Shown here piece after piece: positions 14,866 to 52,669 of a stretch of 64,000 nt of DNA. The notes under the pieces are model-generated. The model saw only the letters and a program-made list of their open reading frames with translations, had not been told where the DNA came from and ran no database searches. The position numbers and the translations under genes were made by a program. Location: the NCBI GenBank assembly GCA_965240325.2, contig OZ251223.1:1240001-1304000 (forward strand), written 5' to 3'. Numbering within the stretch: position 1 is the stretch's first letter; each line of letters begins with the position of its first letter. This DNA is from Rebecca billardiae RCC1528 (lineage: Eukaryota > Protista > Haptophyta).

Positions 14866-16245
14866 ATGGCCGAGGTGGCGGTGCGCCGGTACCGGCTGGC
14901 GGCCGAGCAGGGCAATGCAGGTGAGCAGTTCAGGCTGGGCGTGTGCTACGCACAAGGCGAGGGCATGCCACAGGACTGGGCCGAGGCGGTGCGCTGGTAC
15001 CGGCTGGCGGCCGAGCAGGGCAATGCAGCTGCGCAGACCAACCTGGGCGTGTGCTACAACCGAGGCGAGGGCGTGCCACAGGACTGGGCCGAGGCAGTGC
15101 GCTGGTTCCGGCTGGCGGCCGAGCAGGGCACTGCAGCTGCGCAGACCAACCTGGGCTTGTGCTACGCACGAGGCCGGGGCGTCCCACAGGACTGGGCCCA
15201 GGCGGTGCGCTGGTACCGGCTGGCGGCCGAGCAGGGCAATGCAGATGCACAGTGCAACCTGGGCGTGTGCTACGAAGAAGGCGAGGGCGTGCCGCAGGAC
15301 ATGGCCGAGGCGGTGCGCTGGTACCGGCTGGCGGCCGAGCAGGGCACTGCAGCTGCGCAGCACAACCTGGGCGTGTGCTACCAACAAGGCAAGGGCGTGC
15401 CGCAGGATACAGCCGAGGCGGTGCGCTGGTTCCGGCTGGCGGCCGAGCAGGGCGATGCAGGTGCGCAGTTTGCCCTGGGCGTGTGCTACCAACAAGGCGA
15501 GGGCGTGCCGCAGGATATGACCGAGGCGGTGCGCTGGTACCGGCTGGCGGCCGAGCAGGGCTACGCAGCTGCGCAGAACAGCCTGGGCGTGTGCTACGAA
15601 CGAGGCGAGGGCGTGCCGCAGGATATGGCCGAGGCGGTGCGCTTGTACCGGCTGGCGGCCGAGCAGGGCGATGCAGGTGGGCAGACCAACCTGGGCGTAT
15701 GCTACAACCGAGGCGAGGGCGTGCCACAGGACTGGGCCGAGGCAGTGCGCTGGTTCCGGCTGGCTGCCGAGCAGGGCGATGCAGATGCGCAGTTTGCCCT
15801 GGGCGTGTGCTGCCAACGAGGCGAGGGCGTGCCGCAGGATATGGCTCAAGCGGTGCGCTGGTACCGGCTGGCCATCGACGGCGGCGCGCCAGAAGCCCAC
15901 TTGGCATTGGCGCGCCTGCTGCTTGCAGGCGCGGCCGTGCAGCGCGACGTGGCGGAGGGAGTGCGGCTGCTGCGCCGCGGGCACGAGCTTGACGGCTCCG
16001 TGGTGGATCCGAGCAAGGTGCTCGGCGACTATGCCGGAGATCGCGAAGTGGCCGCTGCGTGCTGCATGGTGTGCGTCAAGTCAGGCCGTGGCGTGAAGAA
16101 GTGCGAGCGGTGCCTCGTGGCGGTGTTCTGCTGCCGCGAGCACCTGCGGAGCGCGTGGAAAATGCACAAGCCGCACTGCACGGAGTGGCGTGCCGCGGCG
16201 GCGATGGTACGTGCTCGAACTGAGACTGCCAATCAATCAGGCTGA
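14866..16245 (+). CDS. Sel1-like repeat + C-terminal MYND zinc finger protein, copy A (9 canonical 36-aa modules)
   Basis: Nine AQ..LG.C...G.G.PQD...AVR..RLA repeats of 108 bp, a capping repeat, then CMVC-x8-CERC-x5-CCREH-x7-HKPHC (MYND). Confidence 0.92.
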   Translation: MAEVAVRRYRLAAEQGNAGEQFRLGVCYAQGEGMPQDWAEAVRWYRLAAEQGNAAAQTNLGVCYNRGEGVPQDWAEAVRWFRLAAEQGTAAAQTNLGLCYARGRGVPQDWAQAVRWYRLAAEQGNADAQCNLGVCYEEGEGVPQDMAEAVRWYRLAAEQGTAAAQHNLGVCYQQGKGVPQDTAEAVRWFRLAAEQGDAGAQFALGVCYQQGEGVPQDMTEAVRWYRLAAEQGYAAAQNSLGVCYERGEGVPQDMAEAVRLYRLAAEQGDAGGQTNLGVCYNRGEGVPQDWAEAVRWFRLAAEQGDADAQFALGVCCQRGEGVPQDMAQAVRWYRLAIDGGAPEAHLALARLLLAGAAVQRDVAEGVRLLRRGHELDGSVVDPSKVLGDYAGDREVAAACCMVCVKSGRGVKKCERCLVAVFCCREHLRSAWKMHKPHCTEWRAAAAMVRARTETANQSG

Positions 16246-16333
16246 TGAGACTGATGCACTGCTGTCTGCTGCCGACCGACGAACAGACTCGACGAAGAGT
16301 CGAAGACGACTGCTAGTACCGCCGTATTTATAT

Positions 16334-17333
16334 GGCCCGCGCGGTGCATTGGGCGCGGAATCTGATCAATCTGAACAGAATCTGAACTCGCGCAGCTCGT
16401 GCCTCGTGGAGCCCGCGACCGCGGGCACGCACTGCTAACCACGTCTTTTATTATTCATGCAAAATATAATAATAAGATCTTTGCATGAATTATAAGGCAT
16501 GATCAGCAAAGAAAAAGGGACGGGGTGGTAGTGTTTTCCAGGGCTGGAGGAGACCGAGCGTCCGATTTTTTGAGACCCCCTCAGTACACATGGATTAGCG
16601 TCGAAAAAGGTCGCGTCCGCCGTCTCGAATAGTGACGAACAGATGATTTATGATGAATCAACGAAACCCACGCCCAAGTGTGCGAGGCTGGGTAATTGTG
16701 GGTAGACTCTCGTTCATGTAGTGTGACCGTAGTAAAATAAATATGGCCTCGCCGCCGCAACGACTCTCGTCGTATCTATCTTGCAGTAATGTATCGTACC
16801 CGCGTACTTGCCGAAAGCTGGGCCGTGGCTATCTCCCTACTTAGTACTTTGGACGTTCTCACGAGCTCGCGCCCATCCACGAGTTCATACCGCATACGAA
16901 AGCGCCGGGCGCGACCTTTTCGGCACGAATCAATGTCTATAGGAGGTCTCAAAAATCGAAACTCGGCCTGAACCAGCCCTCTGAGAAAACCGTCCCCGCA
17001 TGGCCCGTCTTTTTTTCTTTGATCAATAAAGATTTTTTGAAACGTGGTTAGTGCCCGCGGGCGGGCTCCACGCTGCGCGCTCCGCCCTGCGGCACAGGGG
17101 CGTTGCGCCAGCTCGGGACAAACACGGTTCCGGTCTTCTTATTCTGATCTGCTCGCTCTTCAAAACGACGAAATGTTCCGTGCCGGCGGTCCGTGCCCTA
17201 CCCCCTTGACCCTTGTAACTCAAAGTTCGATCTGTACATGTAATTTACCCACCACTGACCACAGGGCTGTCCAAGGATCCTGGGTCTTGGGTCCTTCGCG
17301 TTTGTCCAGCTGGCGCAACGCTCCGCGCGGGCC
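16334..17333. mobile_element. Non-autonomous TIR element (ISL2EU/PIF-Harbinger-like), degenerate relative of 40069-41116; right TIR interrupted by a MITE
   Basis: Left end AT|GGCCCGCGCGGTGCA; right end aaacgtggttagtgcccgcgggcgggctccacgctgcgcgctccgccctgc[insert]cgcgggcc; long imperfect inverted subterminal arms shared with the 40-kb copy. Confidence 0.7.
17095..17325. mobile_element. ~230-bp MITE nested in the right TIR of the element above
   Basis: Imperfect inverted termini CAGGGGCGTTGCGCCAGCTCGGGACAAAC / GTTTGTCCAGCTGGCGCAACGCTCCG; no clear TSD. Confidence 0.65.
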
Positions 17334-17634
17334 GCCATCATCGTCGTCTGTCGAGTGTCGTCCCGGCGGACTCCGGTAATTACGCCGGAACTTACGTCTT
17401 ATTACTACCGGCCGGTCAATATTATTATAATAATCCGCGGTCCGTGACAATTGATATCCAGGGGCGGGCGGCACTACTCATCGGCCTCCGAAGCCGCTCA
17501 CTCCCCATCAGGCCGTCATCACGGTGACGGTCATGCCTCATGGCGTGGATAAGTGATGCCGCCGCAGTGACACTGAGTGTGACAGTGGCGCTTTGGACTC
17601 CGAGGATTCAGCCTTGGCTGTGTTTGCGTCTCAA

Positions 17635-18848: not shown

Positions 18849-19062
18849 CAAGGCGAGGGCGTGCCGCACTGCCGCAGGACTGGGCAGAGGCAGTGCGCTG
18901 GTGCCGGCTGGCGGCCGAGCAGGGAGCCTACGCAGCTGCGCAGAGCAAGTGAGCAACCTGGGCGTGTGCTACAAACAAGGCAAGGGCGTGCCGCAGGATA
19001 TCGCCGAGGCAGTGCGCTTGTTCCGGCTGGCGGCCGAGCAGGGCTACGCAACTGCGCAGACC
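18849..19062 (+). pseudogene. Orphan Sel1 module cassette (about 2 modules, frameshifted)
   Basis: Encodes SNLGVCYKQGKGVPQDIAEAVRLFRLAAEQGYATAQT; no start codon or MYND domain; disrupted by 8-bp duplications. Confidence 0.85.
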
Positions 19063-20271: not shown

Positions 20272-20395
20272 CCTCACGAGCGATCACCTCTCGTGCATGC
20301 CCTAGCTACAGAGCACGGCGCGAGGTGAACGGCTCCATCGTCGTTGCCTGGCCGCCGACCCGTCCGGACCGAGTGCGAAGTACGTGTCCACCATC

Positions 20396-21052
20396 ATGGT
20401 GGGCGATGCCGGGGTCCGCATGCTCCGGCGCAGGGCGGGGCGGGGCGACGCACGTGCGACCTTCCTGCTGGCGAGGCGCACTGAATCGGGCGACGGCGTC
20501 ACGCGGGACGTCGGCGAGGCGCGTCGTCTCTATGCCCTCGCTGCGAATCGCGGGTTTGCGCAAGCGCAGCGACGGTTGGGCGAGATCGCGGGCGGTCACG
20601 GGTCAGCCACGCCGAATTGGGCGGAGGCTGCGCGCTGGTACCGGCTGGCGGCTGAGCAGGGCGATTCGACTGCTCAAGCCCGCATGGGCGTGCTGTATGC
20701 AGGAGGCAAGGGCGTGCCACAGGACTGGGCCGAGGCTGTGCGCTGGTACCGGCTGGCGGCCGAGCAGGGTGATGCCGTTGGCGCAGTAGGCAAACTGGGC
20801 ATGCGATACGCACAAGGCGACGGCGTGCCGCAGGACACTGCTGAGGCGGTGCGCTGGTCCCGGCTGGCGGCCGAGCAGGGTCAACGGAATCAGTGCGACC
20901 CCCTAATCGTCGTCGCCGCGCTCTCCCGAGGCTCGCCCCTGGGCGGCGAGGCCGGCTCGGAGACATGGCCTTGGGCCACGGCGCTCCCACGCCTCCCCGA
21001 CCGCTCCGCGCCGGGTGGCGACGGCGGCTCGGACGAGTTTACCGCGGGCTGA
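20396..21052 (+). pseudogene. Truncated Sel1-repeat gene (divergent N-terminal repeats plus about 2.5 canonical modules, no MYND)
   Basis: GDARATFLLA..., AQRRLG..., AEAARWYRLAAEQG, GKGVPQDWAEAVRWYRLAAEQG. Homology ends about 20881 and the frame reads on antisense into the neighbouring gene. Confidence 0.65.
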
Positions 21053-39927: not shown

Positions 39928-39947
39928 AGAGAGAGAGAGAGAGAGAC

Positions 39948-40006
<59 letters not shown>
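39928..40006. repeat. (GA)n microsatellite
   Basis: Direct reading, one short interruption. Confidence 0.97.
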
Positions 40007-40009: not shown

Positions 40010-40068
40010 TACTTTCTCTTTGGCTTATTAAAACAGCATAATTTGTAATAATAAATTATTTATTATAT

Positions 40069-41116: not shown

Positions 41117-41137
41117 ATCATGATCAATCATTATTCA

Positions 41138-42236
41138 TCATCCGCTGAGCATGCGTGTCCAGTCGTAGGGCTCCCAGCGCTTGGAGAAGGCGAGCACGCG
41201 CTCTTTCTGCTCGGCGAAGGAGAGCTTCGGCCGCGAGCGCATGGGTATGCCGGCGTCGTCGCTCTCCAGCAGCCCTTCCAGCACCTGCCGGCCAAAGTCG
41301 AGTGGGAACGCATCCTGCCGCGGCCGCGCAGAGGGCGCGCGTGGGTGTGGGCGGTCGAGCGCGCATGAGCCGCGGCGGCGCGCACGCGCACGGCGGCGGC
41401 GCGCTTGGCGTATCGAGCGCGGGCGCACCTCGTCCTCCACGTGATGCGCGAAGCCGCGGTCCAGCCCGAACTGCACGTGGAAGTAGGCAAAGTTGGGCGG
41501 CACGCTGCGCCGGATGCCCTTGCCGCTCGTGTCGATGAGCGGCTTGTGCTGCGCCCACTCGCCGCCCGCCTCCAGAATCGCCTTCCGGAAGAATGCCGGC
41601 GCCGCGTCGGCGTCGGCGTCGGGCAGCGGGATCGCCTCGATGCTCAGGTGGCGGCGCTGCTTCGGCAGCCCCACCGCGAGCTCGAGGAAGCACGCGCGCT
41701 TCCCCTCCGCCGCGTACATCTGTATCAGACACTTCTGGAAGTTTCGCAGCTCGTCGCACACCTCGTCGGACGCCATCGTCGTCGCAAGCTCGTGCCCAAG
41801 AGGCTCGAGCACGCAGTGGCCCGGGGCGACGCCCGCGACCTCGGGGAGGCGGAGGTAGGTGTGGTTGCCGATCGCGACGATGAGCGGCTTGAGCCGCGCC
41901 ACGCGCTGCTCGGCGCGCTCCGCCAGGATCGAGAGCTGAGGGCCGGCGCCGCTGCCCGCGCCCTCGCCCAGCGCCGCACCGGCCGCGCCGCGCCGCATCC
42001 CGCGCCGCGCTTCGAGCATGCCCGCGCCGTCGTCGTGGTCATACTCGTCGTCGGCGGAGAGGCCCTTGAAGCGCTTGCTCGTCGTGATGGCGCTCGCGAG
42101 CTGCTCGTCCACGCCGCTGCGCGACGTGCGCTTCTCCGCGCCGTACAGCGCGCCGAGGTCGTGCTCGTCGTCGTCCGCAAAATAGCGCTGCCTCTCGCCT
42201 CCCTCATACAGCTGAGTGCGCCCGCCGCTGCGCCGC

Positions 42237-42285
<49 letters not shown>

Positions 42286-44845
42286 GTCCGGCGGTGCTGC
42301 CGCCGCCGCCGCGCGCGGCGCCGCCGTACGGGTCATCGTCGCCGTGCGCGCGCCGCCCGCCGCCGCCGCCCTTGCCGCCCTTGCCGCCAGACTTGCGCCC
42401 TTGCTTCCGCGAGCGGCCGCCGCCGCCGCCGTCGTCGTCGTCGTTGCGCTTGAGCTCTCGCGTCGTCAGCACGAGCTGGCCGTCTGCGTCGAACTCGGGG
42501 ACGGTCTCGGTGCGCTGGGCGCGGCCGGCGGGTGCGCGCCCGCCGCCGCCGCCGCGCGAGCTGCCGCCGCCCCCTTCGATCTTCTCCTTGATCATCCGCA
42601 CCGCCGTGGCAACAGCGGCCGCCGAGCCGGTGACTACCACTTCACGCTCTGAGCCCGCGGCGCCGGCGGCGCTGCTCCCGCCGGCGGCGCCGGCGGCGGA
42701 GGGCTTGGCGCCGACGGTGATGTTCGCACGGGACGCGGCGCGCAGGGCGCTGATCGTCGCGCCTGCCTTGCCGATGAGCAGCCCCACCGCGTCCTCCGGG
42801 ATCGCGAGCTCGGCCGAGCTCTCGGCCGCCGCCTCCGCGCGGCCCGCCGCCGCGCCCGCGCCCGCACCTGCGGTGCCGCCACTGCCCGCCCCTTCTCCTG
42901 CGTCGAGCGCGGCGCGCGCGGCCTCGAGCTCGGCGGTCAGGCGCGCGTGCGTGTCCGCGTCCCCGGCCAGCTTCGCGCGCATCGCGCGCGAGGCGAGCTT
43001 GTTGATGTCCACCTCTGTGCGAGCCGGCGGCGCGGCCGGCGCCGGCGCAGCGGCCGGCACCGGCGCGGCGGCCGGTGCGGCCGCGCCGCTCGACCCCGCG
43101 GCGGTGTCCGGCGCCCGTGCGGCGCAGGGCTCGGCGGAGGCGGCCTCCAGCCCGTCCGCGCGCCCTGCGGGCGCGGCGCGCGCTCGGCTGCCGTCCGCGC
43201 TCCCGCCGGCCACGTCCGCACGGCGCGGCGACGCAGGCCGCGCCGGGCGCGACGGCGGCGCGTCCCGCTCGGCGGCGCCGCGCCGCGCATCCGCGTGTGG
43301 CCCAGCGTGCCGCCCGCGGCCCTCGCGCCCGTCTGGCCTGTACTCGCGGCCGTCCGCGCGGCGTGGGGCCTCGGCGGCGGCGTCGGCACGCCCGGCGCCC
43401 GGCGTCGCGCGCGCAGGCGCGGGCCGCCCGCGCCGCTCCTCCGTCCCACGCCGCTCGTGCGCCGGCTGCGGCGCGCGCGCGCCTGTCGCCGGCTCCGATT
43501 TTCCCTCGAGGCAGCGCAAAAGAAAATCGCCATCGTTGGCGAACTGGTTGGGGTTGGCTGCGCGCGCGGCGTGCTCGGCCGCGCCGCGCCCGCCGTCAGC
43601 GCCGCGCCCGGCGCCGCGGCCCCGCCCGCCCTCCTCGCGAGGGTCGAGCATGCCGCCACGGCCGATCCCGCGCGGGCCGCCGTTGTCGCCGGAGAGCGCG
43701 CGCGCCGCGCGCTCGCGCTCGCGCGACGCCTGCTTGTGCGCGTAGGCAGACGCGGCGGCGCGCCGCTGGCTGTGGCCGCCCGCCGCGAGCGCGCGCATCT
43801 CGTCCGCCACCTGCGCCGAGCCGAACCGATCCTCCGCGACCTCCTCGAACGAGCGGCCGGACTGCTGCGCCTCCTCCACCGCTCGCTGGAGGCGCTTCAG
43901 CCGCCAGCTGAGCCCGCCGTCGCCAAAAGCGCTGCCGCCGCTGTTGGCCGCGGGCCGAGCGACGGCCGGCGGCGGGTTCGCGGCGGACGCGCCGGCACCG
44001 GCGTGCTCGGCCGCGGCGGGCGCGTGCGCCGCGGCGCCCGCCTTCGTCCACTCGTTCACCGCGACGCCGGCGCGCGCGTACGGGTTCAGCTCGCGAGCCA
44101 GGGCGGCGCCCGTGACAGCGCCATCGGTGGGCGGCGCGCGCGCTCGCTGCGCCGCGGCCACGGCCGCCGGCTCGGCGGCAGGCGCGCCATGGCGCGGCGG
44201 CGGCGGACGCGTCATCCAGCTCAGCCCGGCATCGGCGCGCGCGCTTGCACCCGCGTCCACGCGGGCCGAGCGCGAGGCCGCCGTTGGCCCCTCGCCCCCG
44301 CCGCCCACCCCGGGCCCAGCCTCCGCATCCGGCGCGCGACGGCGCGCGCCTTCGCCGCCGCCGTCGTCAGACTCGCTCGAGCTCGACGAGGCGCTGGCGT
44401 GCGCGTGCGACTTGGAGCGCTTCTTGCTGCCCTCGCGCTTCGAGTCCTTGCGCGAGCGGTGGTGCTTCTCGCGCTTCCCCTCGCGCTTGCCCTCCTTGTG
44501 ACGCTTGCGCTCCTTCTCCTTGCCGCCAGCCACGCGCGCCTCCACCGACGGCGCGAGGAAGGTGAGCTGCGGGCGTGGGCGCGGGCGCGGCCGGGGGAGG
44601 CGTGCGCGTATGAGGCCACGCGCACGAATCAATCCCTTCGCGCCGGCGCAAAGGGTGCCCGCCCATGGAGGCGAGCGCGCACGCGGCGCGCGCACCTCGC
44701 CGCTCGCCACCTTCCGCCTGTGCTCCTCGCGCTGCTCCTCGCGGCTGCGCTCTGCGGCGACCTCGCGCGCCTGCGCGGCCTCTTTGCTCTCAGCGCGCTG
44801 CTTGGCGAGCTCCTCCTTGGAGACGAACTTGATTCCGCTGAGCAT
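41138..44845 (-). CDS. CWF19L2: CWF19-like protein 2 (CwfJ C-terminal domains) with an inserted KH domain; exons 44845-44696, 44566-41429, 41314-41138
   Basis: MLSGIKF start, ELNPY, FGDGGLSWRLK.L.RA.E.A, RYFADDD, LIVAIGNHTYL, GHCVLEP, ELRNFQKCL, FFRKAILEA..EWAQH, PPNFAYFHVQF, W..YDWT end; introns 44695-44567 and 41428-41315. Confidence 0.9.
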
Positions 44846-45029
44846 GCGGGCCCCTCGACAGGCGCGGGCGGCGGTGCGCGTGGGCGGCTGGGCGGCGTGC
44901 TTGCGCACGCCCTCCTTGACGTGTGGGCTGTCGGCGACACGATGGCGGCCTGAGTGCCGACCGATGTTGACGTCAGTGTTGTGCGCTTGTCTCGGTGCAC
45001 GCATCGCCGCAGGTCGTGGCATCGCTCGC

Positions 45030-45917
45030 ATGGCGGCTGACGGTGCCGTCATCCCGGGCGCGCTGCCACCTGGGCGCCTCGAGCGCGACGCGGAGTGGGG
45101 CGCAGTGCTGCGAGAGGCGTGGGCTGCGGACGCTCAGATTGGCGCGTTGCCGCAGCGTGGCGCCGAGCTCGCGTCCGAGCCGCTCGAGTACGAGCACGAC
45201 GGCGTGCGCTTGCACGGGTGGCTGACGTACGACTCGACCGCCTCGAGCCCCCGCCCTGGCGTGCTCGTCCTGCACACCGCCGCCGGACCGCGCGACCTGT
45301 ACTTGCTGTGGCGCGCGGCCGCGCTCGCCAGCCAAGGGTACGTGGCGCTGGTCGCCGACCTCTACGGCGACAGGGACGGGCAAGGCTGGGAGGCCGAGTT
45401 CGCGCGCCCGCGGATGGAGGCGCTGAAGGCCGACCGGAGGCTGCTGCAGGCGCGCACGCGCGCCGGGCTCACCGCCCTCCGCGCGCACGCGCGCGCGGAC
45501 GGCGCCCGGTGCGCCGCGCTCGGCTACTGCCTCGGGGGGCGCGCCGCGCTCGACCTGGCGCGCGCGGGCGACGCGGAGCTGCGCGCCGCCGTGTCGTTCC
45601 ACGGCATACTGGACGCGCTCCCGCCGGAGGCGCTCGGCGAGCGCGTGCACGCGCGCGTCCTCGTCTGCGACGGCGCGCTCGACCCGTTCAACTCGCACGA
45701 GGCGCGCTCGGCGTGCTGCGCGCAGCTGGGCGCGCTCGGCGCCGAGTGGGAGATGCAGGCGTTCGGGCGCGCGCGCCACGGCTTCACGTGCCCCGCGCAG
45801 CGGCTGAACGCCGCCGAGGCGTTCGACTACGAGCCGATGGCGGCGAAGCGCTCGTGGGCCTCCGCACTGGCGTTCCTCGCCGATTCGCTTGATGGCACAT
45901 CTTATTGCGCTTCTTGA
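45030..45917 (+). CDS. Dienelactone hydrolase family protein, copy 1
   Basis: PGVLVLH, GYVALVADLYG, nucleophile elbow GYCLGG, VSFHG, GALDP, HGF (Cys-Asp-His triad). Confidence 0.92.
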   Translation: MAADGAVIPGALPPGRLERDAEWGAVLREAWAADAQIGALPQRGAELASEPLEYEHDGVRLHGWLTYDSTASSPRPGVLVLHTAAGPRDLYLLWRAAALASQGYVALVADLYGDRDGQGWEAEFARPRMEALKADRRLLQARTRAGLTALRAHARADGARCAALGYCLGGRAALDLARAGDAELRAAVSFHGILDALPPEALGERVHARVLVCDGALDPFNSHEARSACCAQLGALGAEWEMQAFGRARHGFTCPAQRLNAAEAFDYEPMAAKRSWASALAFLADSLDGTSYCAS

Positions 45918-46195: not shown

Positions 46196-47557
46196 TCACT
46201 GATCGCTCTCAGTCTGAGTCATCGCCGCCGCGGCGCGCCATGCCGTGCAGTGCGGCTTGTGCAATGTCCACGCGCTCCGCAGGTGCTCGCGGCAGCAGAA
46301 GACCGCCACAAGGCACCGCTCGCACTTCTTCACGCCACGGCCCGACTTGGCGCACACCATGCAGCATGCAGCGGCCACCTCCCGATCTCCGGCATAGTCG
46401 CCGAGCACCTTGCTCGGATCCACCACGGAGCCGTCAAGCTCGTGCCCGCGGCGCAGCAGCCGCACTCCCTCCGCCACGTCGCGCTGCACGGCCCCGCCTG
46501 CAAGCAGCAGGCGCGCCAATGCCAGGTGGGCACGTGGCTGGTCGCCGTCGATAGCCAGCCGGTACCAGCGCATCGCCTCAGCCATATCCTGCGGCACACC
46601 CTCACCTAGATGGTGGCACATGCCCAGGAATTGCTGCGCATCTGCATCGCCCTGCTCGGCCGCCAGCCGGTACAAGCGCACCGCCTCGGCCGTATCCTGC
46701 TGCACGCCCTCGCCTTTTTCATAGAACACGCCCAGGCTTAACTGCGCATCTGCATTGCCCTGCTCGGCCGCCAGCCGGAAGCAGCGCGCAGCCTCGGCCA
46801 CATGCTGCTGCACGCCCTCGCCTCGCTTGTAGCACACGCCCAGGCTGTACTGCGCAACTGCATTGCCCTGCTCGGCCGCCAGCCGGAACCAGCGCACTGC
46901 CTCGGCCGAGTCCTGTGGCATGCCCTGGCCATGTTTGTAGCACACGCCCAGGTCGCTCTGCGCAACTGCATTGCCCTGCTCGGCCGCCAGCCGGAACCAG
47001 CGCACTGCCTCGGCCATATCCTGCTGTACGCCCTTGCCGTGTTTGTAGCACAGACCCAGGTTGCTCTGCGCAGCTGCAGAGCCCTGCTCGGCAGCCAGCC
47101 GGAACAAGCGCACTGCCTCGGCGATATCCTGCGGCACGCCCTTGCCTTGTTTGTAGCACACGCCCAGGTTGCTCTGCGCAGTTGCGTAGCCCTGCTCGGC
47201 CGCCAGCCGGAACCAGCGCACCGCCTCGGCCGAGTCCTGTGGCATGCCCTGGCCATGTTTGTAGCACACGCCCAGGTCGCTCTGCGCATCTGCATCGCCC
47301 TGATCGGCCGCCAGCCGGAACCAGCGCACTGCCTCGGCCATATCCTGCTGTACGCCCTTGCCGTGTTTGTAGCACACGCCCAGGTTGCTCTGCGCAGCTG
47401 CGTAGCCCTGCTCGGCCGCCAGCCGGTACCAGCGCACCGCCTCGGCCATATCCTGCTGCACGCCTTCGCCTCGTGCGTAGCACCAGCCCAGGTTGTACTG
47501 CGCAGCTGCATGGCCCAGCTCAGCCGCCAGGCGGTACAAGCGCGCCGCCTCGGCCAT
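46196..47557 (-). CDS. Sel1-like repeat + MYND protein, copy B (9 modules)
   Basis: MAEAARLYRLAAELG cap, nine 36-aa modules, capping repeat and MYND nearly identical to copy A. Confidence 0.92.
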   Translation of the reverse strand: MAEAARLYRLAAELGHAAAQYNLGWCYARGEGVQQDMAEAVRWYRLAAEQGYAAAQSNLGVCYKHGKGVQQDMAEAVRWFRLAADQGDADAQSDLGVCYKHGQGMPQDSAEAVRWFRLAAEQGYATAQSNLGVCYKQGKGVPQDIAEAVRLFRLAAEQGSAAAQSNLGLCYKHGKGVQQDMAEAVRWFRLAAEQGNAVAQSDLGVCYKHGQGMPQDSAEAVRWFRLAAEQGNAVAQYSLGVCYKRGEGVQQHVAEAARCFRLAAEQGNADAQLSLGVFYEKGEGVQQDTAEAVRLYRLAAEQGDADAQQFLGMCHHLGEGVPQDMAEAMRWYRLAIDGDQPRAHLALARLLLAGGAVQRDVAEGVRLLRRGHELDGSVVDPSKVLGDYAGDREVAAACCMVCAKSGRGVKKCERCLVAVFCCREHLRSAWTLHKPHCTAWRAAAAMTQTESDQ

Positions 47558-47816
47558 GAGTGCACGCAGGCACCGTGCAGCTCGCCAGTGCCAATAATGC
47601 GCGCGCGGGCACACCTCCCTTCACGTCCTTCAGCCGCGGAGCGGGCCGAAAACTCATCGCGCGCCGTACGTACTTGTACGCCGAAACCTGGTCCGGACTT
47701 CGGCACGATGGATCGGACTTCGTTCAGTGCCGACCGATGTTGACGTCCAGCAGTGTTGTGCGCTTGTCTCGGTGCACGCATCGCCGCAGGTCGTGGCATC
47801 GCTCGCGTGGCAGCTG

Positions 47817-48674
47817 ATGGTGCCGTCGTCATCCCGGGCGCGCTGCCAGCTGGGCGCCTCGAGCGCGAAGCGGAGTGGGGCGCAGTGCTGCGAGAGGCGT
47901 GGGCTGCGGACGCTCAGATTGGCGCGTTGCCGCAGCGTGGCGCCGAGCTCGCACGACGGCGTGCGCTTGCACGGGTGGCTGACGTACGACTCGACCGCCA
48001 CGAGCTCCCGCCCTGGCGTGCTCGTCCTGCACACCGCCGCCGGACCGCGCGATCTCTACTTGCTGTGGCGCGCGGCCGCGCTCGCCAGCCAAGGGTACGT
48101 GGCCCTGGTCGCCGACCTCTACGGCGACAGGGACGGGCAAGGCTGGGAGGTCGAGTTCGCGCGCCCGCGGATGGAGGCGCTGAAGGCCGACCGGAGGCTG
48201 CTGCAGGCGCGCACGCGCGCCGGGCTCACCGCCCTCCGCGCGCACGCGCGCGCGGACGGCGCCCGGTGCGCCGCGCTCGGCTACTGCCTCGGGGGGCGCG
48301 CCGCGCTCGACCTGGCGCGCGCGGGCGACGCGGAGCTGCGCGCCGCCGTGTCGTTCCACGGCATACTGGACGCGCTCCCGCCGGAGGCGCTCGGCGAGCG
48401 CGTGCACGCGCGCGTCCTCGTCTGCGACGGCGCGCTCGACCCGTTCAACTCGCACGAGGCGCGCTCGGCGTGCTGCGCGCAGCTGGGCGCGCTCGGCGCC
48501 GAGTGGGAGATGCAGGCGTTCGGGCGCGCGCGCCACGGCTTCACGTGCCCCGCGCAGCGGCTGAACGCCGCCGAGGCGTTCGACTACGAGCCGATGGCGG
48601 CGAAGCGCTCGTGGGCCTCCGCACTGGCGTTCCTCGCCGATTCGCTTGATGGCACATCTTATTGCGCTTCTTGA
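47817..48674 (+). CDS. Dienelactone hydrolase copy 2 with altered N-terminus (or pseudogene)
   Basis: Ancestral ATG is now GTG (47807) and 23 nt are deleted near 47952. A new ATG at 47817 is in frame with the intact catalytic domain. Confidence 0.7.
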   Translation: MVPSSSRARCQLGASSAKRSGAQCCERRGLRTLRLARCRSVAPSSHDGVRLHGWLTYDSTATSSRPGVLVLHTAAGPRDLYLLWRAAALASQGYVALVADLYGDRDGQGWEVEFARPRMEALKADRRLLQARTRAGLTALRAHARADGARCAALGYCLGGRAALDLARAGDAELRAAVSFHGILDALPPEALGERVHARVLVCDGALDPFNSHEARSACCAQLGALGAEWEMQAFGRARHGFTCPAQRLNAAEAFDYEPMAAKRSWASALAFLADSLDGTSYCAS

Positions 48675-48940
48675 GGCTGCCCTGCAACAGACAGCAGTAC
48701 ACGGTACTCTGTAGCTAGCAGCGGTCTCAGCAGATCGACTGTGAATACGTCGTGTGATCGATCCGGGGCGGGCGGGTTACCGCCTGCATCGGTCGTAACT
48801 ATGGCGCGTAGCGAAGTTCATCAGCAGCAGCATGCTGAGCATCATCAGCACCGTCGAAGCAGCCGACGTCCGGTCCGGCGGTAGCAGAATGAGTGCAGAA
48901 TCGATTCCAGCAAACTCAGCCTGCTGATTGATGGACAGCC

Positions 48941-49978
48941 TCACTGATCGCTCTCAGTCTGAGTCATCGCCGCCGCGGCGCGCCATGCCGTGCAGTGCGG
49001 CTTGTGCAATGTCCACGCGCTCCGCAGGTGCTCGCGGCAGCAGAAGACCGCCACGAGGCACCGCTCGCACTTCTTCACGCCACGGCCTGACTTGGCGCAC
49101 ACCATGCAGCACGCAGCGGCCACCTCGCGATCTCCGGCATGGTCGCCGAGCACCTTGCTCGGATCCACCACGGAGCCGTCAAGCTCGTGCCCACGGCGCA
49201 GTAGCCGCACTCCCTCCGCCACGTCGCGCTGCACGGCCCCGCCTGCAAGCAGCAGGCGCGCCAATGCCGAGTGGGCATGTGGCTGGCCACCGTCGATGGC
49301 CAGCCGGTACCAGCGCACAGCGTCGGCCATATCCTGCGGCACGCCCTCGCCTTGTTCGTAGAGCTCACCCATGTTGTGCTGCGCATCTGCATCGCCCTGC
49401 TCGGCCGCCAGCCGGTACCAGCGCACCGCCTCGGCCAAGTCCTGCTGCACGCCCTCGCCTTCATAGTAGCACGTGCCCAGGTTGGTCTGCGCAGCTGCGT
49501 AGCCATGCTCGGCTGCCAGCCGGTACAAGCGCACCGCCTCTGCCATATCCTGCATCACGCCCTCGCCTCCTTCGTAGCACTCGCCCAGGTTGGTCTGCGC
49601 ACCTGCGTAGCCCTGCTCGGCCGCCAGCCGGAACCAGCGCACTGCCTCGGCCGAGTCCTGTGGCATGCCCTCGCCTCCTGCATAGCACGCGCCCAGGCAG
49701 TTCTGCGCAGCTGCGTAGCCCTGCTCGGCCGCCAGCCGGTACAAGCGCACCGCCTCGGCCATATCTGGCGGCACGCCCTTGCCATCATTGTAGCACACGC
49801 CCAGGTTGGTCTGCGCAGCTGCATCGCCTTGTTCGGCCGCCAGCCGGTACCAGCGCACCGCCTCGGCCATATCCCGCTGCACGCCCTCGCCTCGTGCGTA
49901 GCACCTACCCAGGTTGTACTGCGAAGCTGCATGGCCCAGCTCAGCCGCCAGCCGGTACACGCGCGCCGCCTCGGCCAT
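48941..49978 (-). CDS. Sel1-like repeat + MYND protein, copy C (6 modules)
   Basis: Same caps and MYND; exactly 108 aa (3 modules) shorter than copy B. An upstream in-frame Met (MSFRPAPR) is possible. Confidence 0.92.
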   Translation of the reverse strand: MAEAARVYRLAAELGHAASQYNLGRCYARGEGVQRDMAEAVRWYRLAAEQGDAAAQTNLGVCYNDGKGVPPDMAEAVRLYRLAAEQGYAAAQNCLGACYAGGEGMPQDSAEAVRWFRLAAEQGYAGAQTNLGECYEGGEGVMQDMAEAVRLYRLAAEHGYAAAQTNLGTCYYEGEGVQQDLAEAVRWYRLAAEQGDADAQHNMGELYEQGEGVPQDMADAVRWYRLAIDGGQPHAHSALARLLLAGGAVQRDVAEGVRLLRRGHELDGSVVDPSKVLGDHAGDREVAAACCMVCAKSGRGVKKCERCLVAVFCCREHLRSAWTLHKPHCTAWRAAAAMTQTESDQ

Positions 49979-50221
49979 GAGTGTGCGCGCAGGCACCGTG
50001 CAGCTCGCCAGTGCCAATGCGCGCGCGGGCACACCTCCCTTCACGTCCTTCAGTCTTAGTCGTGGAGCGGGCCGAAAACTCATCGCGCGCCCCCACCCGG
50101 TCCGGACTTCGGCACCTTCGTTCGGCACGATGGCGGCCTGAGTGCCGAACCGATGTGACGTCCAGCAGTGTTGTGCGCTTGTCTCGGTGCACGCATCGCC
50201 GCAGGTCGTGGCATCGCTCGC

Positions 50222-51142
50222 ATGGCGGCTGACGGTGCCGTCATCCCAGGCGCGCTGCCACTTGGGCGCCTCGAGCGCGACGCGGAGTGGGGCGCAGTGC
50301 TGCGAGAGGCGTGGGCTGCGGACGCTCAGATTGGCGCGTTGCCGCAGCGTGGCGCCGAGCTCGCGTCCGAGCCTCTCGAGTACGAGCACGACGGCGTGCG
50401 CTTGCACGGGTGGCTGGCGTACGACTCGACCGCCTCGAGCCCCCGCCCTGGCGTGCTCGTCCTGCACACCGCCGCCGGACCGCGCGATCTCTACTTGCTG
50501 TGGCGCGCGGCCGCGCTCGCCAGCCAAGGGTACGTGGCCCTGGTCGCCGACCTCTACGGCGACAGGGACGGGCAAGGCTGGGAGGTCGAGTTCGCGCGCC
50601 CGCGGATGGAGGCGCTGAAGGCCGACCGGAGGCTGCTGCAGGCGCGCACGCGCGCCGGGCTCACCGCCCTCCGCGCGCACGCGCGCGCGGACGGCGCCCG
50701 GTGCGCCGCGCTCGGCTACTGCCTCGGGGGGCGCGCCGCGCTCGACCTGGCGCGCGCGGGCGACGCGGAGCTGCGCGCCGCCGTGTCGTTCCACGGCATA
50801 CTGGACGCGCTCCCGCCGGAGGCGCTCGGCGAGCGCGTGCACGCGCGCGTCCTCGTCTGCGACGGCGCGCTCGACCCGTTCAACTCGCACGAGGCGCGCT
50901 CGGCGTGCTGCGCGCAGCTGGGCGCGCTCGGCGCCGACTGGGAGATGCAGGCGTTCGGGCGCGCGCGCCACGGCTTCACGTGCCCCGCGCAGCGCCTGAA
51001 CGCCGCCGAGGCGTTCGACTACGAGCCGATGGCGGCGAAGCGCTCGTGGGCCTCCGCACTCGCGTTCCTCGCTGATTCGCTTTCGGCACATGTGCCACAT
51101 GTTGAGCTTCTTGAGGCCCAGCAGACAGCAGTAGCTAGCTAG
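50222..51142 (+). CDS. Dienelactone hydrolase copy 3 (different C-terminal tail)
   Basis: Near-identical to copy 1 up to FLADSL, then reads SAHVPHVELLEAQQTAVAS*. Confidence 0.9.
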   Translation: MAADGAVIPGALPLGRLERDAEWGAVLREAWAADAQIGALPQRGAELASEPLEYEHDGVRLHGWLAYDSTASSPRPGVLVLHTAAGPRDLYLLWRAAALASQGYVALVADLYGDRDGQGWEVEFARPRMEALKADRRLLQARTRAGLTALRAHARADGARCAALGYCLGGRAALDLARAGDAELRAAVSFHGILDALPPEALGERVHARVLVCDGALDPFNSHEARSACCAQLGALGADWEMQAFGRARHGFTCPAQRLNAAEAFDYEPMAAKRSWASALAFLADSLSAHVPHVELLEAQQTAVAS

Positions 51143-51391
51143 CAGCGGTCTGCTGACTCTCAGCTGATCGATCGACTCTGCGAATATAAGTGTGATATCG
51201 ATCCGGGTGCTGCGGCGTTACCGCCTGCATCGGGCCCGGTCGTAACTCAGATCAGGCGCGTAGCGAACGGTTCATCGTCAGCGGCATGATGATGCTGAGC
51301 CGATTCGGATAATATTATGAGCAGCCGACGTCCGGTCGGCCGGCAGCAGATCGATTATTCCACTATATATGGGGGTATATTTCCAGCAGTC

Positions 51392-52669
51392 TCAGCCTGA
51401 TTGATGGACAGCCTCGTGCTGCTCGCTCTCAGTCCGAGTCATCGCCGCCGCGGCGCGCCACTCCGTGCAGTGCGGCTTGTGCATTTTCCACGCGCTCCGC
51501 AGGTGCTCGCGGCAGCAGAACACCGCCACGAGGCACCGCTCGCACTTCTTCACGCCACGGCCCGACTTGGCGCACACCATGCAGCACGCCGCGGCCACCT
51601 CGCGATCTCCTGCAAAGTGGCAGAGCACCTTGCTCGGATCCACCACGGAGCCGTCAAGCTCGTGCCCGCGGCGCAGCAGCCGAACTCCCTCCGCCACGTC
51701 GCGCTGCACGGCCCCGCCTGCAAGCAGCAGGCGCGCCAATGCCAAGTGGGCTTCTGGCTGGTCGCCGTCGATGGCCAGCCGGTACCAGCGCGCAGCCTCG
51801 GCCATATCCTGCTGCACGCCCTCGCCTCGTTCGTAGCACTCGCCCAGGCTGGACTGTGCAACTGCATTGCCCTGCTCGGCAGCCAGCCGGAACAAGCGCA
51901 CCGCCTCGGCCATATCCTGCTGCACGCCCTCGCCTAGTGCATAGCACCAGCCCAGGCTGGTCTGTGCAGCTGCATTGCCCTGCTCGGCAGCCAGCCGGTA
52001 CCAGCGCACTGCCTCGGCCACATCCTGCGGCACGCCCTCGCCTCGTGCGTAGCACCAGCCCAGGTTGCTCTGCGCACCTGCATTGCCCTGCTCGGCCGCC
52101 AGCCGGTACAAGCGCACTGCCTCGGCCCAGTCCTGCATCACGCCTTTGGCTTGTTCGTAGCACACGCCCAGGTTGCTCTGCGCAACTGCATTGCCCTGCT
52201 CGGCCGCCAGCCGGTACCATCGCACTGCCTCTGCCCAGTCCTGCAGCACGCCCTTGCCTTGTGCGTAGCACACGCCCAGGTTGGTCTGCGCAGCTGCGTA
52301 GCCCTGCTCGGCCGCCAGCCGGTACCAGCGCACTGCCTCGGCCCTGTCCTGGTGCACGCCCTTGCCTTCTTCGTGGCACACGCCCAGGTTGTTCTGCGCA
52401 AGTGCGTGGCCCTGCTCGGCCGCCAGCCGGTACAAGCGCACCGCCTCGGCCATATCTTGCGGCACGCCCTTGCCATCATTGTAGCACACGCCCAGGTTGG
52501 TCTGCGCAGCTGCATCGCCCTGCTCGGCCGCCAGCCGGTACCAGCGCACCGCCTCGGCCATATCCTGCGGCACGCCCTCGCCTCGTGTGTAGCACCAGCC
52601 CAGGTGGTACTGCGCAGCTGCATGGCCCAGCTCAGCCGCCAGGCGGTACAAGCGCGCCGCCTCTGCCAT
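51392..52669 (-). CDS. Sel1-like repeat + MYND protein, copy D (8 modules)
   Basis: Same caps and MYND; the MYND tail WKMHKPHCTEW matches copy A rather than B/C. Confidence 0.92.
   Translation of the reverse strand: MAEAARLYRLAAELGHAAAQYHLGWCYTRGEGVPQDMAEAVRWYRLAAEQGDAAAQTNLGVCYNDGKGVPQDMAEAVRLYRLAAEQGHALAQNNLGVCHEEGKGVHQDRAEAVRWYRLAAEQGYAAAQTNLGVCYAQGKGVLQDWAEAVRWYRLAAEQGNAVAQSNLGVCYEQAKGVMQDWAEAVRLYRLAAEQGNAGAQSNLGWCYARGEGVPQDVAEAVRWYRLAAEQGNAAAQTSLGWCYALGEGVQQDMAEAVRLFRLAAEQGNAVAQSSLGECYERGEGVQQDMAEAARWYRLAIDGDQPEAHLALARLLLAGGAVQRDVAEGVRLLRRGHELDGSVVDPSKVLCHFAGDREVAAACCMVCAKSGRGVKKCERCLVAVFCCREHLRSAWKMHKPHCTEWRAAAAMTRTESEQHEAVHQSG

Follow-up and report, generated by a model that had tools for sequence, protein, structure and literature searches.

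Sel1-repeat/MYND genes with rapidly evolving predicted groove positions in a haptophyte-like alga

Gene architecture and tandem organization

The analyzed window is a 64-kb stretch of DNA from a haptophyte-like alga. From the ORF listing and translation, we found four ORFs which run uninterrupted from ATG to stop and all carry Sel1 modules and a MYND finger (Table 1). The initial annotation had described four intact, intronless genes with 9, 9, 6 and 8 modules. It turned out that the ORFs are open and that the Pfam and register counts agree with these numbers, and the uninterrupted frames suggest that the genes lack introns. Sel1 was matched with E-values from 1e-107 to 3e-65, in 9, 9, 6 and 8 stretches of genes 1-4 (gene 1: 1.4e-107, 9 stretches), while zf-MYND scored 26-27 bits in each gene (cut-off 22.7). 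The MYND finger has His, not Cys, as the sixth zinc ligand. No NTPase (NACHT/NB-ARC), TIR, death or nuclease domain was found by Pfam in the four proteins, which we propose to be soluble two-part adaptors without signal peptide or membrane segment.

Table 1. Features of the Sel1-MYND family and its surroundings in the window (TRF, Tandem Repeats Finder, 108-bp arrays unless stated; DLH, dienelactone hydrolase)
Feature	Position	Strand	Evidence or remark
Gene 1, 459 aa	14866..16245	+	ORF/translation, Pfam, TRF, AlphaFold
Gene 1 N-cap	14866-14913	+	
Gene 1 Sel1 modules, n=9, 108 bp each	14914-15885	+	TRF 14877-15872, 9.2 copies, 87% matches
Gene 1 C-cap and linker	15886-16062	+	
Gene 1 MYND finger	16063-16179	+	
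Gene 1 tail and stop	up to 16245	+	
Decayed fragment, ~2 modules	18849..19062	+	frame-breaking insertions; scaffold pattern matches
Divergent Sel1-repeat ORF	20384..20880	+	TRF period 111 bp, 79% matches
DLH copy 1 (conserved core)	45195..45917	+	Pfam PF01738, E 2e-28; tail-to-tail with gene 2
Gene 2, 453 aa	46196..47557	-	ORF, Pfam, TRF
Gene 2 N-cap	47513-47557	-	
Gene 2 modules, n=9	46541-47512	-	TRF 46554-47557, 9.3 copies
Gene 2 C-cap, linker, MYND, tail	46196-46540	-	MYND ~46247-46363
DLH copy 2	47727..48674	+	head-to-head with gene 2
Gene 3, 345 aa	48941..49978	-	ORF, Pfam, TRF
Gene 3 N-cap	49934-49978	-	
Gene 3 modules, n=6	49286-49933	-	TRF 49299-49978, 6.3 copies
Gene 3 C-terminal part	48941-49285	-	MYND ~48992-49108
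DLH copy 3	50222..51142	+	head-to-head with gene 3
Gene 4, 425 aa	51392..52669	-	ORF, Pfam, TRF
Gene 4 N-cap	52625-52669	-	
Gene 4 modules, n=8	51761-52624	-	TRF 51774-52669, 8.3 copies
Gene 4 C-terminal part	51392-51760	-	MYND ~51467-51583

DLH copies 1-3 define a tandem unit of 2.4-2.75 kb, which consists of a Sel1-MYND gene and a DLH gene. The three DLH copies share 98-99% nucleotide identity, with a core dS of 0.016-0.033 between copy 1 and the others; the 5' part of copy 2 is unlike those of copies 1 and 3, and the best named relative of copy 3 is from Diacronema lutheri (63% identity). The neighboring genes are cellular (CwfJ/KH, DLH, AIM24), and the local GC content equals that of the surroundings. 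The stretch ahead of gene 1 is AT-rich and full of motifs. Besides, the decayed fragment best matches nucleotides 314-493 of gene 2 (89% over 191 nt, 2 gaps) and is a relic of a family member. The divergent ORF at 20384 carries the family scaffold in its final two or three repeats and resembles the foreign homologue P0124 in its N-terminal part; no MYND was found downstream of it in the same frame.

Variation, selection and turnover of the modules

Across the columns of all 32 modules, the positions with an entropy of 1.5 bits or more are precisely 1, 3, 6, 7, 10, 13, 14, 19 and 22, the nine that the initial annotation had named hypervariable. Positions 16 (1.3 bits), 28 (1.0) and 29 (0.9) come next, and the 27 positions outside the nine are mostly conserved. 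All residue pairs it had listed for positions 6-7 and 13-14 were recovered, and position 7 is mostly a conserved Asn. The near-invariance claimed for the scaffold stands with a qualification: the quoted 21-nt sequence occurs 37 times with at most 3 mismatches (0.04 expected by chance), but mean identity between modules is 83% for DNA and 71% for protein. Codons are fixed per column, including A- and T-ending ones, despite the GC-rich genome, indicating that the modules are identical by descent rather than shaped by codon bias. In variable codons, which follow an NNY/NNA/NNG pattern, the third position is frozen (0.22) while positions 1 and 2 vary (0.44 and 0.52).

Overall, piS and piN are both 0.17 across the 32 modules (36 codons each), and piN/piS is 1.9-3.3 at the nine named positions. 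In codon models that we wrote ourselves, M0 gave an omega of 1.05. M2a was favored over M1a (LRT 98.6, p 4e-22), with omega about 5.3 at about 19% of sites, and M8 over M7 (LRT 111) and M8a (LRT 93), statistics that are inflated by recombination, which these modules undergo, and that rest on a tree built from only 36 codons. A second topology gave an LRT of 102, and the module sets of single genes gave 21-39 each with mostly identical sites. NEB exceeded 0.95 at sites 1, 3, 6, 7, 13, 14 and 19, while the variable sites 10 and 22 received no call on the full tree; site 10 also passed 0.95 when gene 3 modules were analyzed by themselves. N, S, T, D, Y and H are frequent residues at the selected positions.

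The tree-free comparison of the 12 closest module pairs gave a groove-codon pN of 0.226 versus a pooled pS of 0.090 (ratio 2.5; Fisher p 8e-6), with the excess seen in 11 of 12 pairs and a scaffold pN/pS of 0.35. At the named sites, non-synonymous change is faster than synonymous change (omega about 5 in the codon models). Synonymous change is 0.074 at variable codons versus 0.094 elsewhere, indicating that the mutation rate is not locally raised. Purifying selection acts on the scaffold (omega0 0.19 in the M2a/M1a analysis), from which it follows that the genes are functional. As a control, single-copy homologues elsewhere carry old repeats (pS 0.63-0.69).

The caps are constant while the number and order of modules vary. 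As had been noticed for the C-terminal part, its 300 nt are 94-98% identical across the three tandem copies (genes 2-4), and that of gene 1 aligns to them at a similar level; the flanking DNA inside the tandem unit is 94-99% identical, whereas the arrays within it reach only 79-87%. For example, gene 2 has a 324-bp super-period of three modules, in which modules 2 and 5 differ by 5 nt and modules 3 and 6 by 3 nt. Module 2 of gene 3 differs by 1 nt from module 2 of gene 4, and no close counterparts were found for the later modules of gene 3; collinearity between genes is limited to modules 1-2.

Predicted fold and placement of the variable sites

The AlphaFold model of gene 1 (71-sequence alignment) has a pLDDT of 91 overall and 97-99 across the array, and the MYND region is poor (52-67). 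It contains 13-residue helices linked by loops of 7 and 3 residues, and the best Foldseek matches are the SLR structures 6ok3, 4bwr and 8sxq (target TM-score up to 0.90, rmsd 1.7 A). In this model, positions 3, 6, 7, 10, 13 and 14 occupy the 20-140 degree sector of helix 1, opposite the conserved positions, which bears out the single helix face expected by the initial annotation. These tests support a placement of the variable sites on one face of helix 1, predicted to look into the concave groove, an assignment based on homology and helix geometry. In c5321 and LceB, the first helices make up the concave face (PMC3851747, PMC10868440). The tail-peptide contacts Y272, K280 and D304 of c5321 align with module positions 6, 14 and 1, and T306, N310 and R317 with positions 3, 7 and 14. 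For LceB, conservation was seen on the convex, not the concave, face (PMC10868440), indicating that groove binding is not universal among SLR proteins.

Generally, the solved SLR proteins c5321/EsiB (4bwr), LceB (8sxq), LpnE (6deh), HcpC (1ouv) and mammalian SEL1L have the same fold, the same 13-7-13-3 repeat geometry and a concave face formed by first helices, and where the groove binds peptide the anchoring Asn aligns with module position 7. They differ from the family in being secreted, periplasmic or ER-luminal, in their divergent repeats and in having no MYND, and diversifying selection is not reported for them in the cited literature.

Possible function, alternative explanations and related systems

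The best explanation as a whole, to which we give a probability of about 0.6, is that these genes encode diversifying Sel1-groove/MYND adaptors, probably engaged in a molecular arms race. The modules would stack into a right-handed superhelix whose first helices build a concave groove, and by analogy part of a partner protein probably lies in this groove in extended form. The Asn at position 7 may hold the backbone of the ligand, as is the case in c5321, HcpC and TPR proteins, and specificity would come from positions 1, 3, 6, 10, 13 and 14 together with the rim positions 19 and 22. Short motifs rich in proline (PxLxP-type) are the targets of MYND fingers, and the constant C-terminal block of C-cap, linker and MYND finger might therefore tether the complex to one fixed partner. 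Diversity probably arises by point substitutions at groove positions kept by positive selection, and by unequal crossing-over or ectopic conversion, which would alter module number and order and leave caps and flanks homogeneous. In the most likely setting, the adaptors would recognize foreign or selfish proteins that change quickly, for instance those of viruses, parasites or mobile elements; sensing of viruses or parasites in particular is a conjecture. The observation of the initial annotation is confirmed and its interpretation partly supported, an immune-like role being conceivable. The residues predicted to line the binding groove are the only ones that evolve faster than neutral, which recalls the fungal and brown-algal proteins regarded as candidate immune sensors.

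The same adaptors might instead serve internal cell biology, either as substrate adaptors with partitioned specificities for a MYND-bound machine (chaperone, co-repressor or ubiquitin system) or in mating and self-recognition. Animal MYND fingers recruit co-repressors and chaperone co-factors (PMC3555993), SLR proteins such as SEL1L in ERAD are general scaffolds, immune-type domains are absent, and homologues elsewhere are single-copy genes amid housekeeping genes. We nevertheless regard this as rather unlikely, for subfunctionalized housekeeping adaptors usually end under purifying selection, and sustained groove omega of about 5, conserved repeats, number variation and tandem clusters form the syndrome of non-self recognition (PMC4986451). 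It is improbable that the family is an ordinary, recently amplified one whose unconstrained Sel1 surface drifted neutrally after duplication. The same nine positions also vary elsewhere, with a pN of 0.56-0.62 in unrelated single-copy homologues and likewise among the repeats of bacterial Sel1 arrays, the scaffold is near the universal Sel1 consensus (55-65% gapless identity to bacterial proteins), and the LRTs can be inflated as stated. However, the synonymous rate is an upper limit for neutral sites, omega here is about 5, the tree-free ratio is 2.5 (p 8e-6), the result recurs in four separate genes, and third codon positions are frozen beside variable first and second ones.

Binding of nucleic acids, one module per base, in nuclear-organelle or transposon conflict like restorer-like PPR/OPR clusters, is decidedly improbable. 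The N/S/T/D/Y/H enrichment recalls PPR code residues, and an upstream in-frame ATG could add a basic extension of 33-35 aa to genes 3 and 4; green-algal MYND-type alpha-solenoid expansions have been flagged as possible organelle factors (PMC13126933). But ORF inspection leaves no room for such an extension in genes 1 and 2, the arrays have an acidic pI of 4.5-5.5 and a net charge of -9 to -16, with groove-variable residues that are neutral to negative on balance, and the nearest solved relatives bind peptides or proteins; we know of no RNA-binding Sel1 protein. It is very improbable that the genes result from faulty assembly, are decaying pseudogenes or travel as cargo of an integrated virus or mobile element. 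Repeat arrays are easily mis-assembled, this family has several tandem copies, and the AT-rich stretch could be read in this way, but four ORFs of 345-459 codons remain open at 13-21% array divergence, the scaffold omega is low, the neighbors are cellular genes, the GC content fits the surroundings, and a scan of viral contigs gave a single match, a short ordinary-repeat Sel1 ORF without MYND. Programmed diversification, by somatic assembly from donor cassettes or by targeted mutation such as a diversity-generating retroelement, is hardly credible, even with variable cassettes between constant caps, an orphan cassette fragment and the NNY/NNA/NNG pattern. Invariant scaffold adenines (GCA at position 2; CAG at 5, 20 and 35; GAG at 24 and 34) exclude adenine-directed mutagenesis, and synonymous change is not raised at variable codons. 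Agnathan VLRs, to which the family had been likened, share constant caps, variable cassette number and variable surface positions, but they have LRR cassettes and an incomplete germline gene that is completed in somatic cells with cassettes drawn from many flanking donors. The likeness fails in this defining part: each of the four germline genes is complete with an intact frame, the sole orphan fragment in the window is decayed and just 89% similar to its best match, and no sign of VLR-type somatic assembly was seen in the four genes or the 64-kb window.

For the diversifying adaptors that we favor, the comparison with fungal NLRs and brown-algal proteins holds for the repeat domain. The WD/ANK/TPR repeats of fungal NLRs (Podospora het-d/het-e/nwd) are likewise near-identical in tandem, variable in number, shuffled within and between paralogues and positively selected at few positions per repeat, and in their TPRs the selected positions fall on concave-face helices (Dyrka et al. 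2014, PMC4986451). Unlike them, the family has Sel1 repeats of lower internal protein identity (71% versus the 85% defining the fungal class), a C-terminal MYND finger as constant partner and an algal host, and it lacks both the NACHT/NB-ARC NTPase and a death or effector domain at the N-terminus, which rules out that these are NLRs. The brown-algal LRR-ROCO and NB-ARC-TPR families, put forward as recognition receptors but functionally unproven, are also algal, lineage-specific and fast in repeat turnover (Zambounis et al. 2012, PMC3341825). They diversify via one-repeat exon shuffling and contain GTPase or NB-ARC domains absent here, whereas our arrays, each inside one uninterrupted ORF, vary through unequal recombination and point substitution.

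Other protists already have the Sel1-MYND architecture itself, in single-copy genes whose repeats are ordinary. These uncharacterized relatives (P0124, P0130, P0134, P0154, P0168, P0208; clusters under that name exist in the ESM Atlas) share the C-cap, the C-terminal MYND, the conserved DR-[DE]-V...CC linker (alignment A3) and, at two examined loci, a single uninterrupted ORF. They differ in a C-terminal part just 31-47% identical to the family, in old repeats, and in housekeeping neighbors without DLH; among the library proteins no match had an E-value below 1e-30, and the best ones show 38-47% identity. Besides, metagenomic, mostly bacterial Sel1 arrays (such as P0024, P0088, P0039 and P0042) reach an internal repeat identity of 79-86% and are also fused to a separate constant domain, although these partners are others (peptidase, kinase, caspase or TIR), the proteins are apparently prokaryotic, and homology does not extend beyond the repeats. 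In the P0024 array, the differences cluster at module positions 1, 3, 6, 7, 14 and 16.

Architecture and relatives of the Sel1-MYND genes

The window contains four genes, numbered 1 to 4 along the sequence (see the table), in which an array of 108-bp Sel1 modules is followed by a MYND finger. The initial annotation had described them as four Sel1-MYND ORFs with 9, 9, 6 and 8 modules, and this was confirmed by Tandem Repeats Finder, by the ORFs and by Pfam. Matches within the four arrays amount to 82-87%, and two of the four additionally have a 324-bp super-period. With residue 1 placed directly after “EQG”, all modules are exactly 36 residues long, and the order in each protein is N-cap, modules, C-cap, linker and MYND, in which the N-cap (15-16 residues) corresponds to helix 2 of a half repeat. 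Pfam found Sel1 (PF08238; curated cut-off 30.7 bits) in 9, 9, 6 and 8 stretches and one MYND finger (PF01753; cut-off 22.7 bits) in each of the genes with 26.0-27.1 bits over the full-length profile (1-39). Sel1, caps and MYND span the full length of the proteins, and Pfam at E up to 0.01 gave no NACHT/NB-ARC or effector domain. The claim of a near-invariant DNA scaffold also held, as the 21-nt scaffold string quoted for it occurs 37 times at no more than 3 mismatches, against 0.04 expected by chance.

Positions of the Sel1-MYND genes and of other features in the window
Feature	Position	Strand	Details
Gene 1 ORF	14866-16245	+	ATG-to-stop open; array 14877-15872, 9.2 copies; Sel1 E 1.4e-107
Gene 2 ORF	46196-47557	-	ATG-to-stop open; array 46554-47557, 9.3 copies; Sel1 E 1e-99
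Gene 3 ORF	48941-49978	-	ATG-to-stop open; array 49299-49978, 6.3 copies; Sel1 E 2.7e-65
Gene 4 ORF	51392-52669	-	ATG-to-stop open; array 51774-52669, 8.3 copies; Sel1 E 3.4e-85
In-frame ATG upstream of gene 3	50081-50083	-	35 codons before N-cap
In-frame ATG upstream of gene 4	52766-52768	-	33 codons before N-cap
DLH copy 1	45195-45917	+	tail-to-tail with gene 2
DLH copy 2	47727-48674	+	head-to-head with gene 2
DLH copy 3	50222-51142	+	head-to-head with gene 3
CWF19L2-like ORF	41138-45052	-	1304 codons
Decayed Sel1-module fragment	18849-19062		89% similar to best match
Divergent Sel1-repeat ORF	20384-20880	+	
AT-rich stretch	14500-14790		just upstream of gene 1
AT-rich stretch	12365-12426		2 kb further up
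455-bp tandem unit	3456-4344		
389-bp tandem unit	30952-31697		
GC-rich stretch	54000-64000		
(AT)58	7889-8004		
(AG)39	39928-40006		
(CT)67	53166-53301		

Seven of the eight zinc ligands of the C4-C2HC set are canonical in the MYND finger of all four genes, and at the sixth His takes the place of Cys (“CCREH” at 16130-16150 and at the matching sites of genes 2-4); most homologues have Cys here, while the protist Sel1-MYND protein P0208 has His. The in-frame ATGs upstream of genes 3 and 4 are conserved, and the extension they would add is basic and rich in Ala, Arg and Pro, which might be a targeting peptide. Such an ATG is absent in genes 1 and 2, both of which begin directly within the first repeat helix. 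The two AT-rich stretches upstream of gene 1 carry GTTTTC/GAAAAC-type motifs and differ sharply from their GC-rich surroundings; they may act as a promoter element or belong to a small family of repeats.

To find relatives of the family, the C-terminal 119 residues were searched exhaustively with HMMER against 1.84 billion cluster representatives, which gave no match at E <1e-30 and 173 matches at E up to 1e-3, the best being 38-47% identical. Nothing was found by a word-indexed search with the C-terminal 135 residues, and the whole-protein homology search was dominated by bacterial Sel1 proteins and hence uninformative on this family. According to Pfam, 9 homologues have the Sel1 plus MYND architecture, one of them found in the transcriptome of a marine protist (MMETSP), the rest in metagenome or read-archive assemblies. 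What the aligned proteins have in common (alignment A3) is the C-cap, a DR-[DE]-V...CC linker and the MYND finger; the linker Arg and the zinc ligands are among the 11 invariant columns. In the ESM Atlas, 24 of the 30 nearest clusters are named “Sel1 repeat/MYND finger”, and for one of them Haptophyta is the commonest recorded phylum. Both homologue loci that we examined are single-copy amid housekeeping genes, and synteny with dienelactone hydrolase (DLH) was not found at these two foreign loci. Literature searches, which also covered haptophytes and E. huxleyi, gave no description of hypervariable Sel1-MYND families or of this family. In green algae, one paper reports that MYND-type alpha-solenoid proteins have expanded in a species-specific manner, without an analysis of their variability (PMC13126933). 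Judged from these homologues, the Sel1-MYND architecture is old, present in databases and uncharacterised, while its clustered, homogeneous and fast-evolving version is lineage-specific.

An exact-pattern scan of metagenome contigs retrieved one Sel1 module, in a compost-metagenome Sel1-repeat ORF with a signal-peptide-like start, and a scan of viral contigs likewise retrieved one module only, in a short Sel1 ORF; neither scan gave strain variants of the family. Besides, five metagenomic, mostly bacterial Sel1 proteins from the homology search (P0024, P0088, P0039, P0017 and P0042) have 79-86% identity among their own repeats, and such high-identity arrays are joined to other domains, among them peptidase and autotransporter domains. 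In P0024, the one array that was read, the differences lie mostly at module positions 1, 3, 6, 7, 14 and 16. Prokaryotes may thereby have a counterpart of this design. Within the window, the N-terminal part of the divergent Sel1-repeat ORF resembles P0124, a protist Sel1-MYND protein, its last 2-3 repeats have the family scaffold and no in-frame MYND follows; it may represent a paralogue of ancestral type, a truncated gene or one that continues beyond an intron.

Variable module positions, predicted groove and selection

The 32 modules have a mean identity of 83% in DNA and 71% in protein, with 11 invariant columns at the protein level. Nine hypervariable positions had been proposed, and column entropy reached 1.5 bits or more at exactly these (1, 3, 6, 7, 10, 13, 14, 19 and 22). 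At the nine variable codons, the pairwise difference per site at codon positions 1, 2 and 3 is 0.44, 0.52 and 0.22, compared with 0.07, 0.08 and 0.14 at the other 27. Codons are column-specific; for example, position 2 is GCA in all 32 modules, codons 1 and 3 end in T, and codons 13 and 14 end in A. The genome has 60-84% GC, yet these A- and T-ending codons persist, which shows identity by descent from one ancestral module; since one codon is kept per column, the amino-acid differences arose via the first two codon positions. For the same reason the low dS is not attributed to codon bias, because every column keeps its own codon, A- and T-ending ones included.

The AlphaFold model built with a 71-row alignment has a pLDDT of 91 overall and 97-99 over the array (53 for the single-sequence model), and the MYND part is of low confidence (52-67). 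In the modelled module, helix 1 covers positions 2-14 and helix 2 positions 22-34, separated by loops of 7 and 3 residues (13-7-13-3), and an identical repeat geometry was reported for c5321, a solved Sel1-like repeat (SLR) protein (PMC3851747). The best Foldseek matches are all SLR structures, namely 6ok3, 4bwr (c5321), 8sxq (LceB), LpnE, SEL1L and HcpC, with E values of 1e-25 to 1e-18 and target TM-scores up to 0.90 for the first three (0.89 for LceB, rmsd 1.7 A). The arrays are thus predicted to have the SLR fold, in which antiparallel helix pairs form a right-handed superhelix with the first helices on the concave side, a face assignment taken from the c5321 and LceB papers, both of which describe a concave inner surface made of first helices (PMC3851747, PMC10868440). 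The initial annotation had placed positions 3, 6, 7, 10, 13 and 14 on one helix face; predicted structure and helical wheel agree, as these positions fall in a 20-140 degree arc of helix 1 with the conserved 2, 4, 5, 8, 9, 11 and 12 opposite.

In crystals of c5321, the C-terminal tail of an adjacent molecule is bound in the groove via Y272, K280, D304, T306, N310 and R317, of which N310 is a peptide backbone anchor, likewise in HcpC and Hop (PMC3851747). By phmmer these residues align to module positions 6, 14, 1, 3, 7 and 14, and the selected positions thus match a pocket for which peptide binding is documented. The backbone anchor corresponds to position 7, which is Asn in 19 of the 32 modules. 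Judged from helix geometry and the alignment to c5321, on which the groove assignment rests, the arrays are likely to bind through the groove, although conservation in LceB sits on the convex face (PMC10868440), which counts against certainty.

In pairwise comparison of the 32 modules, pooled piS (0.173) and piN (0.169) are nearly equal, while piN/piS is 1.9-3.3 at the nine variable positions and at most 0.6 at most scaffold positions. The codon-site models suggested in the initial annotation were run on these modules with our own Goldman-Yang likelihood implementation (F3x4, IQ-TREE topology, free scale), and they gave omega of about 5 for 19% of sites. Omega is 1.05 under M0; M2a (lnL -1291.5) was strongly preferred to M1a (lnL -1340.8; LRT 98.6, p 4e-22), with 62% of sites at omega 0.19, 18% at omega 1 and 19% at omega 5.3, and sites 1, 3, 6, 7, 13, 14 and 19 had a posterior >0.95. 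M8 gave omega 5.4, with an LRT of 111 against M7 and 93 against M8a, and under the FastTree topology the LRT was 102. When the modules of each gene were analysed alone, the LRT was 39, 23, 21 and 30 for genes 1 to 4; sites 1, 3, 6, 13 and 14 recurred, and site 10 was called in gene 3. Neutral drift of the variable positions is rejected by these omega tests.

Because recombination can inflate such LRTs, a tree-free check was added. In the 12 closest module pairs, pN at the nine codons is 0.226 against a pooled pS of 0.090 (Fisher p 8e-6; 11 of 12 pairs agree), while the scaffold has a pN/pS of 0.35. Synonymous change is not raised at the variable codons (0.074, compared with 0.094 elsewhere), which argues against locally targeted mutation. 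As a control, the repeats of two single-copy protist homologues have saturated pS (0.63-0.69) and a scaffold pN of 0.26-0.27. Any Sel1 repeat is naturally free to vary at these positions, and the present family stands out by its young, homogeneous scaffold together with the replacement excess.

Turnover of the arrays and the tandem unit with DLH

Genes 2-4 belong to a tandem unit of 2.4-2.75 kb, in which a Sel1-MYND gene (-) and a DLH gene (+) are arranged head-to-head; gene 1 lies 30 kb off on the other strand. Across the units, identity is 98-99% for the DLH cores (dS 0.016-0.033), 94-98% for the C-terminal parts of genes 2-4 (dS 0.08-0.12, dN 0.015-0.048), and only 79-87% for their arrays in the best register. 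Module 1 is common to genes 2, 3 and 4 with 4-9 nt differences and module 2 to genes 3 and 4 with 1 nt difference, and from module 3 onward the closest counterpart in any gene is 10-14 nt away. Recent duplications within genes are seen for modules 2 and 8 of gene 1 and for modules 2/5 and 3/6 of gene 2. The C-terminal variants form a mosaic, with K-M...E in genes 1 and 4 and T-L...A in genes 2 and 3, which indicates exchange between non-adjacent copies.

Synonymous divergence is 0.17 for the modules versus about 0.02 for the flanks, so point substitution after the last duplication cannot explain the differences among the arrays. Either a larger pool supplied new array interiors through recombination, unequal or ectopic, or the flanks were homogenised with the arrays protected; both alternatives keep the arrays diverse.

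As for the partner gene, the best named relative of DLH is from Diacronema lutheri (63% identity), with dinoflagellates and a pelagophyte next, which makes a haptophyte-like alga a plausible host. The 5' part of DLH copy 2 (47727-47950, +) is unrelated to copies 1 and 3, while its 232-codon core is 3-4 residues from each, so this copy may be 5'-truncated or have a different first exon. Next to DLH copy 1 is a single ORF with KH and CwfJ C-terminal domains, similar to CWF19L2, whose start abuts or overlaps the DLH start, consistent with a shared bidirectional promoter.

Comparison with known recognition systems and possible roles

Interactions of algae with viruses and parasites govern bloom collapse and carbon flow, and to our knowledge the means by which haptophytes and other bloom-forming microalgae recognise viruses and parasites are almost entirely undescribed. 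With its clustered genes, constant caps, near-identical repeats and an omega of about 5 confined to the predicted groove, the family has the kind of pattern that flagged fungal non-self recognition genes; the same evolutionary pattern nominated candidate receptors in brown algae, and here it is found on a Sel1 repeat with a MYND partner domain. The analogy drawn in the initial annotation holds for fungal NLRs, whose repeat domains are described as having such a design (PMC4986451), and for the brown-algal candidates, for which it was proposed (PMC3341825). It fails in mechanism for agnathan VLRs, whose somatic assembly starts from an incomplete germline gene with many donor cassettes nearby, since complete germline ORFs are present for all four genes and the window has only one decayed fragment and one divergent Sel1 ORF besides. 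With NLR/STAND proteins the genes share an internally conserved repeat domain with selection on the predicted binding face, but their identity (83% DNA, 71% protein) is somewhat below the 85% internal identity used for fungal NLR repeats, and NLR identity is rejected as they contain neither an NTPase nor any effector domain. The NNY pattern of the variable codons led us to consider adenine-directed mutagenesis as by diversity-generating retroelements, whose targets vary only where a template repeat has adenines. This was rejected because the adenines of scaffold codons are invariant in 26-32 of the 32 modules, and because the variable codons 13 and 14 have for the most part kept their final A. 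RNA binding of the PPR/OPR kind is disfavoured by the acidic arrays (pI 4.5-5.5, net charge -9 to -16); restorer-like PPR/OPR proteins have a basic surface and a targeting peptide, whereas genes 1 and 2 have no extension and genes 3 and 4 alone have an optional upstream ATG.

The evidence supports the view that genes 1-4 encode soluble adaptors, in which a predicted groove under diversifying selection is coupled to a constant MYND finger. The MYND fingers of BS69 and DEAF-1 bind PxLxP-type motifs (PMC3555993). Sensing of viruses or parasites by the family is an attractive guess by analogy; its role may instead be internal client sorting, mating or genome conflict. In its widest form, the guess would be that haptophyte-type algae have a germline repertoire of intracellular recognition proteins on a chassis not recognised before, in which a fast-evolving, peptide-binding Sel1 groove detects viral or parasite proteins and MYND signals to a fixed host machine, while positive selection and the shuffling of modules diversify the groove. 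Such immune receptors would form a class separate from NLRs, VLRs and LRR receptors, with the similar, highly conserved bacterial Sel1 arrays fused to protease, caspase, kinase or TIR domains as prokaryotic counterparts, and we give this whole proposal a probability of about one in four. If this role is true, the family would be an independent solution to receptor diversity and offer a concrete gene set for infection tests. Whatever the role, it is a natural library of Sel1 grooves on a near-invariant scaffold, of use for the binding code and for binder design.

Other repeats are also present in the window. The 455-bp unit occurs twice in tandem with 99% identity and the 389-bp unit in 1.9 copies with 95% identity, three dinucleotide microsatellites are scattered along the sequence, and the last 10 kb has 80-84% GC with many short GC-rich tandem repeats.
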